NCBI GenBank assembly: GCA_904063045.1
Contig: CAJFCJ010000009.1
Span: forward strand, 2,294,968 to 2,358,967
DNA length: 64,000 nt
Direction of reading: 5' to 3'
Origin: Dimorphilus gyrociliatus
Taxonomy: Eukaryota; Animalia; Annelida
How positions within the stretch are numbered: position 1 is the stretch's first letter; every line of letters begins with the position of its first letter. Below are positions 50,359-57,845 of the stretch, piece after piece. The position numbers and the translations under genes were made by a program. The notes under the pieces were generated by a model that worked only from the letters and a program-made list of their open reading frames with translations, did no database searches and was not told the origin of the DNA.

Positions 50359-50782
<424 letters not shown>

Positions 50783-50824: not shown

Positions 50825-50864
50825 AAGTCTTCATTTAAAAATCATACCTTTTATTATGCTTTGA

Positions 50865-53800
50865 CTATAATATTGCGCATATTTTCGAAGATTTACCTCG
50901 AAGTTGAACAGTGGATTTTTCATCTGCAATCTTTAAAAAGGAAACCTTTCCATCTTGACAACCAATCACCACAATATCGCTCGCGGTAAGGTCGAAAGCT
51001 AGAGGTGTACTATGAGTACTAAAACGACCGAGAATTGAGCTAGTTGCAGTACACGCTACAGTTAGTTGTTCACTAGAAAGAGATAGCCAGGCGGCTTTCC
51101 TTCCATCAAAGCTAAGTCGTGGATAAGTATAAGGCCCAAGAGAATCTTTTACACCATTTCCTGATTCAAATTTGGCTATAATCTTTGACATATTAATATC
51201 ATAAACAGAACAGTCTGCATCAATACCCTTGGAACCGTCTTTACAAACGTTTAAATTCCTATGGGGAACAATATTCAAGGGCGTCTCTTTCGGACCGTTT
51301 AAATCTATGCTTATTTTCACTAATCGATCATGGGGATCAGTTTCAACTACATAAAATATATCAGCATCTTGAACTACCGTTAGGGAATCCTTTAAAATGT
51401 TTTTCTTTGTTAAAATTAGTTCCCGTTTGAGATTATAGACGGTAATAGTGCAAGATCGACCTTCAGCAGTCTGAGGATATTGCTGTAAGAGTATTACATA
51501 ATCATTTAATGTTGTCTCCACAGCAGAAAATCCTCCAACTTTATTTGGAAATTCAAGTATCTTGCAGCGTTTCTTGATGTCCCAAGCCATTGTGGAAACA
51601 TCCTGATCAGGGGCAGTTTCTAAATGCGTTAATAAAACTCTTGAATTTGAAGAATTCATTTGTAATGTATAGCGTTTCAATCTAGCAACATCAATTGGAA
51701 TACTCCATAGGTGGCGCCCAGAAAGCGAATCCCATATATTCAACAAAGCTTTCTGACCAAGTATCCAATCCCTCGTTACGACTGTCTTCCCATCATAGGA
51801 TATTATTGGAGGTGTAGTGAAATAATTCTGAGCATCTTCGTAAACAGCTGCTGGCTTTGATAGAATGCAACAATTTTCTGGATCCCATACCCTAGTCTCG
51901 GTGGATTTTCCCCTTGTTACGACCACTGGAGGAAAATTTTTCGAACACGAAACAAACCTACAGAACCACTTCAAATTCAAAGGCCCCACTTCGACTTTTC
52001 TTTCTAATAATTTAGGAAAACTCCATATATCAATACTTTTGCTTCTTACACTGCTAATACCAATTAAATTTTTCATTGATGTAGAGAATACGCCATCTAT
52101 TGTTAATTTTGATATGATGGAGTTGTGTAATACCTTACCATTAATAATATTCAGAGCTAACAAATGATAATCAAATCCAATGATAATCTTATCATCATCG
52201 TAAATTGAATAACAATTGAGAGAATGTTTTAAATTGTGACTGTAAGATTTTAATACAACGTCAGGTATTGTTAATTTTGAAACGAACTTGTTCATTTTCA
52301 AATCCCAGCATATAATTGTAAATTTAAAAACGACAAAAAGCCATTTTTCGTGTAGGAAACAATCTCGAACTTCTTCGGATTTGACATATTTTCTTAAATC
52401 AATTTTACTCATTACTCCTCCATAATCATCTTTATCGCATGATAATATATCAACGACTTTGTCATTCCTCACTCTATAAAGAGAATCTGTTAGATCGTGA
52501 TAGATTGATTTGAAAATTGGAGTATCTGTTTGTATAGTTTTAACTGTAGTAAAATCTTTCAAGTTTAATAATTCTATTTGATCAACTGATGTTAGAATTA
52601 TAAACGAATTTTTATCATCTATATGAAAATGATGGGAGTTTGTGTTGGTCTCGGCCAAAAGGTTACCGCTACTCCAATCAAACTTTGATATTATCTTATT
52701 TTTTATAAAGATAAGTAAATCATTCGCTTTGCTCCATAATTGCATATTCGTTACAAAGCCTACTGATGGGAAAGACTTAGCTAGTACAGTTGTTCTTAAT
52801 AATTCGCAAGATTCCAGATGTAATTGATACACTCTATTTATGTCTTCGTGAAAAGGCGCGGCCAATGTAACTCGTTTCTCAGTCTTGTCTAAATAATAGA
52901 CTTTAAGCTTTGCAGAAAACCCATCATCAGTTAAAGAAGGTAGAGGTATCTCTTTGTCAATTACTCCTGTTTCAAGATCCCATACTACTAGGTCATTGTT
53001 ATCAGTTATTGTTGATATTCTACTTTTATTTAAAGAGCTGAATATAATATTTTCACCCGGTCTTATATTGTTATGCTGCAAGGAAAATATCCTAGCTCCT
53101 CCTGGTCCAGGATAACATTGATGTAGGGGTTTAATTATGCAATCTTTAGTATTTAGGCATTGCTTAATTAAGTCTTTTAATTTAGGTCTTTTGTCGTCAG
53201 CCAGTTCGTATAATCTTCCAATCAATTCAACGCTCAAGGTGTCTGGCTGAGTAAGTAGAATGTTTCGAACCGAGCTCAAACTCTGATAAACAAGGGAACA
53301 CTCTTCATCGTCTGAGACTTGTCTAAAATCTTCGATTAAGTTATTTATACCAGTCGCCACTAATTTTATCTTTATCCATTCGTAATTAAATAAGCATTCA
53401 CTAAATAGAAGATCAAACTGCTTAGATAAGGTATAATGATAAGGTAAAAAGTATAATTTTCTTAGGTTATAATTGATATTTGTACCATTTCGAAGGTTAA
53501 TGATTGGTTGATTAGGTACGTTTCTGTGAGCAGAGCTATTATTTGATTTCAAGTTAAAATGCTTTACTTGCTGCTTTGTAAATTGAAAAGGTTTCGGCTT
53601 ATTATACCAGGTTCCAGAATAGAACTCACTTAGAGTTGTATGGAGAATCTTTCTCTGATGTTCAACGTACATACTTGTTGCAACCTCTATAAATTGACGA
53701 TGATACCAGAAATGAACTGTTGTACCATGAGATTCTCTCTCAGTGAGATAGGGAGATATACTATGCCTCAATCTAGCCCAGAGGAATGATGGTATACGTC

Positions 53801-56372
53801 TAACTGGAGGTATATGGTATTGAAAAACTTCCCCCAAAACTTCATCATCCAAAGATAAGACATCTTGCATCTCCATTTCGCTAAGGCCTTGCGGGTTACA
53901 AGTCAAATAACCAAGTGCCCTGCAAACGAATAATCTTCCATATTTTTTCTCAAGCTGTTTAAATAACTGATGAATTGTTCCTTGTACAGAATTTTCAATT
54001 CCAAAAGTATTTTCATTTTCCTTTTGTTTAGTATTGCCGAATGATTTTTTTAAGAGAAATTTTGTTCTCTCCGGGGGCTTTACTTTTTGAAAGGATTTCC
54101 ATGTTAGAGCACTGTCGAATGCCAATTTTACAAAAATTGGTAAACTACAATGCGAAAACATTTTAACTAGATAACTCTCTTGCTCCTGTGTTATTTTACG
54201 TTTATACTTTGTCAACCATACTTTTATAATATCAATTGATAATTGACCACCCAATATCTTTAACGGATTGTAATGAGCATTCGGTAATCTTTCCTTTAAG
54301 TTATCTAATATTCCATATTCTTTCGATAGCGTTGATACTAAGATGTAAGTATTTTTGGGTAGTATTAAAGGTAACCAGCTAAGTTTATGAGCACCATCTT
54401 CCACAGATAGTTGATCAATGGAATCAAGTAATAAGATTAAAGGGCTTTTCTCTGTACTTTCATTTAAAAGTTGATAAAATTGTTTAATTAATTCAGAAAA
54501 ATCAGACGTTTCTGTGTAAGTTAAATTGAAAATTTTACTAATTTGTTCGCATATCGATCTTAAAAGAGAGCGAATATTTGAACTGAATGGAGTCGTTCCC
54601 AGAAATCGAACAATAACAATTGGTTCCACGTTGGGAAAACAGGTTGGAATCTATTAATATAATTATAAAAGGTTAATTAGTTTTTTAAAATACAAGGTAA
54701 ATGAACTCACTAATTTAGATAACATTGCCATAACACTGGTTTTACCACAACCAGATGGCGAATGAACGATTATAGGTGTATTAGACTCTTTAACTTGATT
54801 TAGTATGTTTGTTAAGAACTGTTCTCGTCCCTGGAACATATTTATTCGGTTAAGAGCAGAATGTAAATGTTGAATTATCTCGTTGAAGAGCAATTGGCTT
54901 TCTTTTCCAGAATCTAGAACATTTTGTTTTGTCATGGCATCGTCTATTAAACGTGAAATAACTTCATAAAATTGATTGGACACTCTGCTCAAATATTCTC
55001 TATGTTTCACTTCATTAACTCCTTTACCACCGCAATTCCATTTAATATTCGACCTGGAAAAGTAAAGAGCTTTCATGTCTTATCCTAATGAGAAAGGGAG
55101 TGTAACTACCCACTTGAAGATTAATGAATCTGGCATCTTTTGAGTAATATTATCTCTTAATGCAGATAAGGAACTCTGAGCGTTTGTATCTATTTGGTCA
55201 TCTCGAATATCGATATAGCGCCAAACTCTATCAGCAGGATGCTCTAAATGCTCTTGGAGATCTTCAATATGTCTGATAAAGCAAACACATCCATCAAGAT
55301 TTTGAGAATTTTTTAGACCTTCCATAACTTCTTTTTCAGTCACTAAAACAATAAGATAAAAACTTAAAATACACAATGAAAAGCCTCTGTATATTACAAA
55401 GCTATAATTTAACGATAAACAAGAATTTTAAAGGTCTCCCTTACTGGACATAAAATACATTTTACAGTCTTCTTCTAACAGGAAACCTTCTTTGACGCAA
55501 TAGCTACCCATAACTTTTATAGCGTTAGTTAACTGTTTTTCTTTCGTTCTCCATTCACCAATACTACGAGATCTCTCCGTCTTATCCTTAAAAGAAAGTG
55601 TATATAACGTTATACTCGTCAAAGAAAATCTTTTAAAAGGTTAATTATCTTTTACCTCTGATAAGAAGTTGGGATATTTTTCACTAACTGAACAAGCAAC
55701 ATACTCTGATTCAAAGGCATTTTCGTCCAATTTATACCATTCCTTAAGGGCTTGTAAATCTTCTTCTGAATTTAAGATTGTTGCTACCTTCTCAAAAGCA
55801 ATAAAATGCTTCTCAGGTATTTTTCGGGGAAGGGGACAATATCCGTGTTTCTGACCCAAAAAAACCTATAAAACTATTCAATAAAGTCTCTGTCTTGGTT
55901 TATATTCGAAAACTGGAGATACATACAACAAAACTAGGTCCTATAGAAAGCTTTTGGCATTTTTTTATCTCTTCTATACATAATAATTCCGTTTCGTGAT
56001 CTTCCACAGCCTGATCTTGTATTCCCCACCTCAAATCGACTAACTATTGAGATAAGATCCTAAGATAATCTAATATGATTGTTTAGTAATTTTTGTGTTA
56101 TTTTTTACTTGAAAATCGCAACCGTATTGTTTTCTACAATAATCGCTTAACTTTGGATAAACATCCATCATTAAGATATTTCTTTCGGCAGCCATATCTA
56201 TTTGGAAAATATAGTGTGTGATTAGAATTTATATACTTAAGATATCGTAAAGAATATTAGATTAGCAACCGGTAAAAGTTGATGATATAAAAATTCTTAT
56301 AGATCGTGAGCGATCCTGTGGAATATTTTCCAACTTTCCCCTTAATATCCTATTTTTATCGCTGTCATTCAT
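50865..56372 (-). CDS. NWD1/NWD2-type STAND protein: DUF4062-like N-terminal domain + NACHT NTPase + WD40-like propeller, ending in CaaX
   Basis: N-terminus 'IRIFISSTFTDMAAERN..VYPKL..VVDLRWGI..LCIEEIKKCQ..GPSFVVFLGQKHGY'; Walker A 'HSPSGCGKTS'; 'VRFLGTTPFSS'; Walker B 'LLLDSIDQL'; 'WYHRQF'; long beta-rich C-terminus; ends 'RGKSSKICAIL*'. Final exon is ~3.77 kb. Confidence 0.92.
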
Positions 56373-56719: not shown

Positions 56720-57845
56720 TTATTTCCCAGAAACCGGTGCTCTTGTAGCTGAAGGTATTTGGAATACTGTACCGCATGTTGAACACAAGGGTCGAAATGC
56801 ACAAAATACTGATAAACAAACGGAACATACGAAACCGACATGCACGAGTCGTCTATGACATGCACAGGCCACTTGAGATTGAACTTTTGGGGCAGCTGGC
56901 TGTCTCAAAGTGCTTCTCAGGGAGGTTTCGACCAGCGGTGAGCACAGTAGGTGTTGGAGTAAAGCTTCAACAGTTTGTACATTAAGAAGAACTCCTCCAG
57001 TCACATGGCATAATTGAGATAGTAGGGAAGCTTGCGAATCCTATAATAAGGTTATTTATAACTTTTGAGAAAAACTTTGAAATATAAATTAAATTACCTT
57101 ATTAATGACAATACCATCTATAGTGACACCAAGTTTTTGAGCTGTAAAGGCTATGTTCATTAGGTGCATATATTGTGCTGGGCTGTCATCAGCAGCTTTC
57201 AGCACTGTTATTCTGCTCTTTAAGGATCGCTTATTAATACAGCATAGTGCAGTCGAAAGAGCTGGAGCCAAGTTACATTCACTCTTTTCACATTCACCTG
57301 CTAGTTGTTGGATCTCGGTCTTTATGATGTTATTCATTTTAACTAATTGTTCTAATTTTCCATCACATGACGTTGACGGCTCACTACAAAAGAACATTAC
57401 AAAGAATTAATAACTTTAATAAAAAATTTCTGAAAAACTTGACAAAATTTTTAGATTATTTATACAATTTTTTTATTAAAATATTAAAATATGAAAAGAT
57501 TAGTTCACAAAATTGATTTATGCTACTAGTTCTACCTCAATTCTTTGAGACCAGGTATTTTTTTTTGAGGCCACAAAACTTTAATGTCTTTACCACAGAC
57601 TGCTATCAAAGATAACTCATTATTAGTTTTCATCAACAGGTGGGCATTGCAATAGGAAATTACACCATCTATACATGCTCCAAGTACATCCTAAAAGTAG
57701 ACGAATTTAAAGTTTTAAACGAAAAATACCTAAAAATTGATATAGTATAATTACTTACACCATTTCTATACTCTGTTATTTTACGTTCCCACCATATGGG
57801 GTTTAAATCTAAAACAACAACCAAAAAATTACTAGAGCTATTCAT
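56720..57845 (-). CDS. GTF2H3: General transcription factor IIH subunit 3 (p34)
   Basis: 'LVVVLDLNPIWW', 'LAPALSTALCCIN', 'QYMHLMNIAFTAQKLGVTID', 'ILQQAS..TGG', zinc finger 'AACACH..GFVCSVCLSVFC..CSTC'. Confidence 0.96.

Follow-up and report, generated by a model that had tools for sequence, protein, structure and literature searches.

A predicted prenyl anchor at the C-terminus of an NWD-family STAND ATPase of Dimorphilus gyrociliatus and of its relatives across animals

The stretch of the Dimorphilus gyrociliatus genome analyzed here, called the window (64,000 nucleotides; GenBank assembly GCA_904063045.1, contig CAJFCJ010000009.1, positions 2,294,968 to 2,358,967), carries on its minus strand the gene DgyrCDS7852, which encodes an NWD-family STAND ATPase ending in the CaaX box CAIL. 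We consider it probable that this protein is prenylated and tethered to membranes, and that its tail, of the form S-x-x-C-a-a-X, is an ancestral trait of the family, retained by most animal phyla and by vertebrate NWD1. What was observed is the conserved motif, found at the end of the coding sequence in RNA, a tail that is disordered in a structural model, and prenylation enzyme genes in the genome; that a lipid is attached, which lipid it is, the membrane reached and the role of the protein are inferred. Since the box is conserved and stands on a disordered linker, in a genome with the required enzyme genes, prenylation and membrane anchoring are the best reading. A prenyl membrane anchor had been suggested in an initial annotation of this DNA, and the idea now has comparative support on these same three counts, prenylation itself being a prediction.

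The tail was read from the minus strand, where 50880-50900 encodes Arg-Gly-Lys-Ser-Ser-Lys-Ile, and the protein thus ends R-G-K-S-S-K-I-C-A-I-L-stop. The initial annotation had written this end as RGKSSK-CAIL; the terminal CAIL and its stop are real, and the Ile before the Cys had been omitted (the true string is ...RGKSSKICAIL). CAIL follows the rule for boxes of the geranylgeranyltransferase-I (GGTase-I) type, with an aliphatic residue at a2 (Ile) and Leu at X. The public protein DgyrCDS7852 (P0001, 1672 aa) is 100% identical to the open reading frame of the last exon in the window, and the exons sum to 5019 nt, equal to 1672 codons and a stop, of which the last exon contributes 3786 nt. A public contig of 5360 nt lacks six introns, each with GT..AG ends on the minus strand, and its joints confirm them; this contig is therefore derived from RNA. 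It has no joint between 54650 and 50659, stop included, so the CAIL-stop is present in the mature transcript and is not spliced away; Cys1669 lies exactly four residues from the true C-terminus. Further splicing of the last exon, which had been named at the outset as the way in which CAIL might lose its terminal place, was not seen in this continuous contig, and the assignment of a terminal GGTase-I-type CaaX box stands. In the AlphaFold2 model, the last 17 residues (model residues 807-823) follow the last propeller strand and have a predicted local distance difference test score (pLDDT) below 50, which places the CaaX box on a disordered linker in the model.

The closest relative is a protein encoded by a genomic Logan contig of a related worm (L016), 64% identical, which ends KKSTVCVIL-stop and has the same convergent Elongin C neighbor. 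The Dimorphilus protein, this contig and bivalve proteins named 'NWD2-like' form what we call the query clade (n=14). Two family trees, one with 140 members and one with 250, group the query and the bivalve proteins with support of 98-100, and the query nests within a CaaX-rich clade of 175 rows; the larger tree was made with hmmalign to the A4 profile and FastTree, and its supports are local SH-like values only, so that its deep branching and any orthology to vertebrate NWD2 are provisional. All 14 proteins of the query clade end in C-x-[I/V/L]-X (CAIL, CVIL, CTVL twice, CEIL, CYIL, CNVL, CSLL, CTIL, CALL, CVLV, CVVV, CTII and CAIA), X being Leu in 10, Val in two, Ile in one and Ala in one. 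Among orthologues the linker varies in sequence and in length, from 20 to about 75 residues, with S-x-x-C-a-a-X always at the very end. When the C-terminal 820 residues of 20 sequences are aligned, the CaaX Cys is one of just three invariant columns.

The same end recurs in the wider family. The CaaX reading, made at first from a single protein, is borne out by the C-termini of homologues, with a Cys at -4 in all 14 members of the query clade and in 79 of 277 family proteins; counts at the remaining tail positions are 0-9, apart from 18 at -12, where the Cys is a lepidopteran propeller residue. In these 79 relatives, a2 is I, V or L in 74 (94%), a1 is variable, X is L, S, Q, M, I or V in 73, and a Ser is found at Cys-3 in 68. 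The 12 residues upstream carry on average 2.8 Lys or Arg (K/R) and 0.8 Asp or Glu (D/E) in CaaX tails vs 1.0 K/R and 2.4 D/E in tails without the Cys (277 proteins). On the tree, the trait requires 18 changes, compared with 38-52 when labels are shuffled. As far as sequences can tell, this family-wide pattern is that of prenyltransferase substrates maintained by purifying selection. The Ser at Cys-3 is Ser1666 in Dimorphilus (50886-50888), and in relatives it is flanked by K/R in the pattern K-S-[KR]-x-C. We take it to resemble the phospho-switch serines beside the prenyl Cys of Cdc42, RhoA and Rap1, and it may regulate release from the membrane. The tail is too variable at positions -2 and 0 for a PDZ ligand, and that reading was abandoned.

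CaaX-tailed NWD-family proteins were found in molluscs, brachiopods, nemerteans and annelids; in chelicerates, a myriapod-like sequence, Daphnia, nematodes, an orthonectid and some rotifers; among deuterostomes in echinoderms, hemichordates, amphioxus and a tunicate; and also in corals and choanoflagellates. The canonical NWD2 of molluscs, brachiopods, nemerteans and annelids has a highly conserved CaaX tail, ...AKARGAQKSRACVIS, and the NWD2 of chelicerates, nematodes and Daphnia ends in tails of this type too. The CaaX tail is absent from insects, whose NWD2 has acidic tails, from malacostracan and barnacle crustaceans, from bdelloid NWD2 and from a large sister clade. Vertebrate members were obtained by exhaustive profile search, the hits being named by cluster look-up. 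NWD1 ends in SSRTCALL in lampreys, NTCVLL in the teleost Hoplias, SQICHIV in the frog Rhinoderma and ISQVC(V/A)(V/I)I in five marsupials (CVVI, CVII or CAII); the marsupial representative was identified by its 89% match to an antigen peptide of human NWD1 given in PMC4039239. The tail of teleost NWD2 (678 members in its cluster) reads ...TPTKKSELLQ and lacks a Cys. The initial annotation had held that prenylation is not a usual feature of human NWD1 and NWD2; applied to vertebrates, this agrees with teleost NWD2 and does not agree with the NWD1 of lampreys, teleost, frog and marsupials. The CaaX end of vertebrate NWD1 is a new observation of this analysis, and its presence in these four groups indicates an ancestral family trait that is not peculiar to this worm.

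Two choanoflagellate relatives have terminal Cys motifs, P0350 (Hartaetosiga balthica, ...SSSCCCIIN) and P0208 (eukprot, ...GSACCMIL), so the motif may predate animals. The Dimorphilus genome has at least three NWD-family copies. The paralogue DgyrCDS5351 (P0200), which groups near the vertebrate NWD1 clade, ends ...TSKACCIL, and its double Cys suggests a prenyl group with a possible acyl group beside it. Another paralogue, DgyrCDS2759 (P0214), ends ...ILSKQC and has no CaaX box.

In the searchable literature, no paper connected NWD1, NWD2 or KIAA1239 to CaaX, prenylation or farnesylation; the terms occurred together only in an unrelated gene list. The prenylome survey of 2007 does not mention NACHT or WD proteins (PMC1847700), the preprints on TeTIR/DUF4062 domains do not mention NWD prenylation (10.64898/2026.05.01.722283, 10.64898/2026.09.21.753143), and a literature search found no prenylated STAND or NLR protein. 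The CaaX tail of the NWD family, vertebrate NWD1 included, is thus apparently unreported.

The Dimorphilus genome encodes the enzymes for such a modification. Three prenyltransferase beta subunits were assigned without ambiguity by PDB sequence search: those of farnesyltransferase (FTase, 1e-107), of Rab geranylgeranyltransferase (7e-36) and of GGTase-I, whose best PDB match is PGGT1B (1.5e-47, the next class reaching 1e-19). The genome also has genes for PPTA alpha-subunit repeats, for ICMT and for a Rce1-like protease. In the mechanism that we propose, cytosolic GGTase-I would attach a C20 isoprenoid to Cys1669; AIL would next be cleaved off and the exposed C-terminus methylated by the endoplasmic reticulum (ER) enzymes Rce1 and ICMT, and the propeller end of the protein, which is its sensor end, would thereby be tethered to the cytosolic face of membranes.

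Geranylgeranyl is the likely lipid by prediction. Leu at X with Ile at a2 is the classical GGTase-I determinant, and Leu is the commonest X in the query clade. Yeast Cdc42, which is geranylgeranylated and a canonical substrate of GGTase-I, ends in this same box, and CAIL has been measured as a substrate motif of GGTase-I and FTase (PMC11304957, PMC1175975). The box might instead be used by FTase, giving a farnesyl or mixed lipid on Cys1669 and a weaker, more dynamic anchor, and we regard this as unlikely although it has several points in its favor: FTase also accepts CVIL, CVLL, CAIL and CCIL in vitro (PMC1175975), X is not fixed in the query clade, the canonical NWD2 clade has X of the farnesyl type (Ser, Gln or Met), and an FTase beta gene is present in the genome.

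The surroundings of the box bear on the membrane that would be reached. The 12 residues before Cys1669 contain three K/R (R, K and K), no D/E and no second Cys. The dense run of about six or more K/R that serves as second signal in tails of the K-Ras4B or Rac1 type is not seen, and the word 'polybasic' used in the initial annotation was an overstatement. A CaaX protein that lacks a second signal is processed at the ER and tends to stay on the ER and Golgi. With three K/R and no second Cys, the protein would therefore most likely reside on endomembranes or the ER rather than on the plasma membrane. Such retention fits a report on mouse Nwd1, found on the cytoplasmic face of the ER with a C-terminal fragment that was enough for this localization (PMC11897295); if mouse Nwd1 is prenylated, its residence on the ER through this fragment would be explained.

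Several points weigh against the proposed prenyl anchor. The tail is weakly basic, and no biochemical lipidation of any NWD protein was found in the searchable literature. CAIL-type boxes are farnesylated in vitro and X drifts within the clade, which makes the type of lipid uncertain. The box has been lost in insects, in malacostracan and barnacle crustaceans, in bdelloid rotifers and in teleost NWD2, and is therefore not indispensable to the family. The vertebrate NWD1 sample is non-eutherian and consists of lampreys, one teleost, one frog and five marsupials. Finally, the transcript evidence is one assembled contig from one public run and not reads, and this sole contig keeps the seventh annotated intron, which has an in-frame stop codon. 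The retained form would encode about 300 residues, that is the DUF4062/TIR-like module alone; the retention could reflect incomplete splicing, a choice of the assembly or a regulated short isoform.

The product of the gene, a STAND ATPase of the NWD family, has the domain order DUF4062/TIR-like, NACHT, NWD1-type winged helix, helical domain and two WD40-type beta-propellers in tandem, followed by a disordered, mildly basic tail of 20 residues with CAIL at its end. The initial annotation had proposed a DUF4062-NACHT-WD40 architecture with a TIR-like N-terminal fold. Its outline stood, with DUF4062 and HTH_NWD1 above the Pfam cut-offs and the propellers given by the model; NACHT falls just under the cut-off (22.9 bits against 26.7), as do the AAA_16 and nSTAND1 matches around GCGKT, and the bivalve orthologue P0149 is above the NACHT cut-off (42.6 bits). 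The TIR-like fold was not confirmed by fold search. The N-terminal model (pLDDT 80) gave no match at E <= 0.001 in Foldseek against PDB, and the best Z in VIA-align wide, 5.2, belonged to unrelated proteins of alpha/beta and helical type. Its TIR-like nature therefore rests on the Pfam DUF4062 match and on two preprints that describe DUF4062 as a TIR-like NADase family (10.64898/2026.05.01.722283, 10.64898/2026.09.21.753143). At the other end, the AlphaFold2 model of residues 850-1672 (823 residues, mean pLDDT 78.8) has a short helical domain and then about 735 residues of beta-propeller, the all-beta part being residues 68-803 of the segment. In Foldseek these 823 residues match full-length Apaf-1 and tandem WD40 proteins (E ~1e-22, TMq up to 0.53). 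Pfam gives weak WD40 matches in this region (E ~1e-3), below calling, so the propellers were settled by structure prediction.

This architecture, which parallels Apaf-1 and STAND receptors of the TNL type, would also suit a membrane-anchored innate immune (NLR-like) receptor, a role raised in the initial annotation; its TIR-like module would then act as an NAD-consuming effector after oligomerization. The DUF4062/TeTIR domains of TEP1 and of bacterial defense proteins are NADases; full-length human NWD1 and NWD2, however, had no NADase activity and the NWD2 domain had low activity (10.64898/2026.05.01.722283, 10.64898/2026.09.21.753143). An immune role is also rendered improbable by the conserved, low-copy orthologue in conserved synteny, unlike a lineage-expanded and fast-evolving receptor, and by the mouse Nwd1 phenotypes, which concern ER calcium (SERCA2) and purine metabolism (the purinosome). 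The sensor of DgyrCDS7852 is WD40 and not leucine-rich repeats as in NLRs. Conserved synteny, low copy number and mouse phenotypes point rather to a housekeeping signaling scaffold on endomembranes.

There is only a slim chance, in our estimate, that the terminal Cys is kept for another reason, such as S-acylation alone, binding of a metal or partner, or a C-terminal degron, in a protein that is soluble or reaches membranes through partners of its propellers. Such a view draws on the extra Cys beside the box in some relatives (CCIL, CCIQ and CCCIIN), which are possible acylation sites. The authors who studied mouse Nwd1 also explain its ER localization by interactions with other proteins through WD40 (SERCA2), with no mention of a lipid (PMC11897295). 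A Cys at an exact position, followed by a variable a1, an aliphatic a2 and an X of restricted choice, is the signature of a prenyltransferase substrate, however, and the basic charge co-varies with the Cys. We know of no other C-terminal signal with a Cys at -4, an aliphatic a2 and a restricted X. That the box is a product of chance or of a wrong gene model, with the true C-terminus elsewhere or the four letters coincidental, is effectively refuted already: a lone Cys at -4 is expected in about 2% of random tails (Cys frequency 1.9%) and the 3' end is backed by one RNA contig only, but chance is excluded by conservation in the clade and the family, and an artefact is contradicted by the RNA contig unspliced through the stop, the AATAAA right after it, the convergent Elongin C starting 82 bp downstream, which leaves no room for another exon, and the CVIL-stop of the related worm in the same synteny.

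The CaaX-less, acidic-tailed sister clade has features of its own at the other end of the protein. Many of its members start with MGCGxS, MGCAxS or MGSGSSK, which are of the N-myristoylation/palmitoylation type (for example P0283, P0286, P0288, P0291, P0296, P0297, P0303, P0338, P0171, P0172, P0184 and P0199). Among 408 family proteins, starts resembling N-myristoyltransferase substrates occur in 30 without CaaX vs two with CaaX, which suggests an alternative lipid anchor at the N-terminus. We tentatively propose, at somewhat less than even confidence, that lipid anchoring is ancestral to the DUF4062-NACHT-WD40 NWD STANDs of animals and choanoflagellates and is achieved in two interchangeable ways, by C-terminal S-x-x-C-a-a-X in the clade of the worm gene and vertebrate NWD1 or by N-terminal MGCxxS or MGSGSSK in the sister clade; these proteins would then be signaling machines of the membrane surface.

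STAND and NLR ATPases are usually treated as soluble, and the membrane residence of some (NLRP3, NOD1/2) comes from reversible acylation. If the prenyl anchor is real, a conserved CaaX box on a TIR-like-NACHT-WD40 family would define where these proteins act, and the prenylome would gain a client that is very large and not a GTPase. It would also provide a one-residue handle, by changing Cys to Ser or by prenyltransferase inhibitors, on the ER localization of NWD1 and on its SERCA2 and purinosome functions, and would be relevant to the biology of statins and prenyltransferase inhibitors if eutherian NWD1 keeps the box. Vertebrate NWD2 and insects, which have lost the box, would serve as natural comparisons.

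The features of the gene are listed in Table 1. The two AATAAA hexamers after the stop have the same arrangement in contig L016. The convergent Elongin C gene (window 50591-50782, plus strand; PDB Elongin-C, E 6e-34) has its stop 82 bp from that of the NWD gene, and the pair is also present in L016. The NWD RNA contig reaches 206 nt past the stop, into the last exon of Elongin C, and the 3' ends of the two genes therefore probably overlap in antisense. Directly upstream of the NWD gene is a gene for Tfb4/GTF2H3 (TFIIH p34; window 56723-57406, minus strand), at a spacing of a few hundred bases, which is typical of the compact Dimorphilus genome.

Table 1. Features of DgyrCDS7852, in window positions
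Feature	Position	Strand	Remarks
Coding region of the NWD-family STAND gene DgyrCDS7852	50865..56372	minus	8 exons, equal to P0001 block by block
Coding exons 1-4	56372-56270, 56197-56109, 56043-55927, 55865-55656	minus	
Coding exons 5-8	55586-55445, 55342-55113, 55052-54711, 54650-50865	minus	
Seventh annotated intron, 60 nt	55053-55112	minus	GT..AG; in-frame TAA; kept in the sole RNA contig
DUF4062 / TIR-like (TeTIR) module, residues 26-113	55836..56297 (approximate; spans three introns)	minus	Pfam PF13271, 30.9 bits vs cut-off 24.7
NACHT-type P-loop NTPase core, residues 390-519	54327..54776, split by intron 54651-54710	minus	Walker A SPSGCGKTS, Walker B LLLDSIDQL
NWD1-like winged helix-turn-helix, residues 628-746	53646..54002	minus	Pfam PF25469 (HTH_NWD1), E 8e-13, 48.8 bits vs cut-off 27
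Tandem WD40-like beta-propellers, about residues 917-1652	50928..53135	minus	AlphaFold2 model and Foldseek
Flexible, weakly basic linker, residues 1653-1668, ADEKSTVQLRGKSSKI	50880..50927	minus	pLDDT below 50; conserved Ser at Cys-3
CaaX box Cys1669-Ala-Ile-Leu1672, predicted geranylgeranylation site	50868..50879	minus	Direct reading
Stop codon TAG	50865-50867	minus	Inside the unspliced part of the RNA contig
AATAAA polyadenylation-type hexamer	50850..50855	minus	9 nt past the stop
Second AATAAA	50816-50821	minus	34 nt beyond the first copy

Among known systems, vertebrate NWD1 shares with the query the order of DUF4062/TeTIR, NACHT, NWD1-type winged helix and WD40 propellers, as well as S-x-x-C-a-a-X tails (CALL, CVLL, CHIV and CVVI in lampreys, teleost, frog and marsupials). 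It differs in belonging to the paralogue clade B2, the query being in B3, and in having Ile, Val or Leu at X; the N-terminal domain of human NWD1 is described as truncated in one of the TeTIR/DUF4062 preprints. NWD2 (KIAA1239) of vertebrates and insects (Drosophila CG10185 group) provides the best-scoring named relatives among the matches listed, with 36% identity over NACHT and the winged helix-turn-helix and the same domain order. Where NWD2 has the box, X is Ser, Gln or Met, and teleost and insect NWD2 lack it; the query, in contrast, falls in an annelid-bivalve clade of its own, in which the WD40 sequence is degenerate and X is mostly Leu. The best structural match to the C-terminal 823 residues is Apaf-1 (3shf, E 4e-22; 5juy, TMq 0.53), which has a helical domain and tandem propellers and follows the same STAND principle, oligomerization under the control of a propeller sensor. 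Unlike the query, Apaf-1 has an N-terminal CARD and an NB-ARC core, is soluble and is not known to have a lipid-anchor signal. TEP1 and the other TeTIR-DUF4062 NADase STANDs have the same N-terminal domain family directly upstream of NACHT; TEP1 differs by its TROVE/vWA extensions, its place in the vault particle and its proven NADase, with no lipid anchor discussed, whereas the activity of the NWD-type domain is low or undetectable.

The tail itself is most like the CaaX tails of Rho/Cdc42 and G-gamma proteins, with a variable linker rich in K, R and S, an aliphatic a2 and a terminal Leu, and the box of yeast Cdc42 (CAIL) is identical. The Cdc42 tail KKSRRCVLL and the phosphorylation sites of RhoA and Rap1 recall the basic residues and Ser before the Cys of NWD tails. 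Here, however, the cargo is a STAND ATPase of 190 kDa, the basic patch is weaker (+3) and no chaperone of the guanine nucleotide dissociation inhibitor type is implied. S-acylated NLRP3 is reported as a STAND/NLR protein that resides on membranes through a covalent lipid and a basic patch (PMC11392533). Its acylation is a reversible thioester on internal cysteines, whereas DgyrCDS7852 would carry an irreversible C-terminal isoprenoid on its CaaX box.

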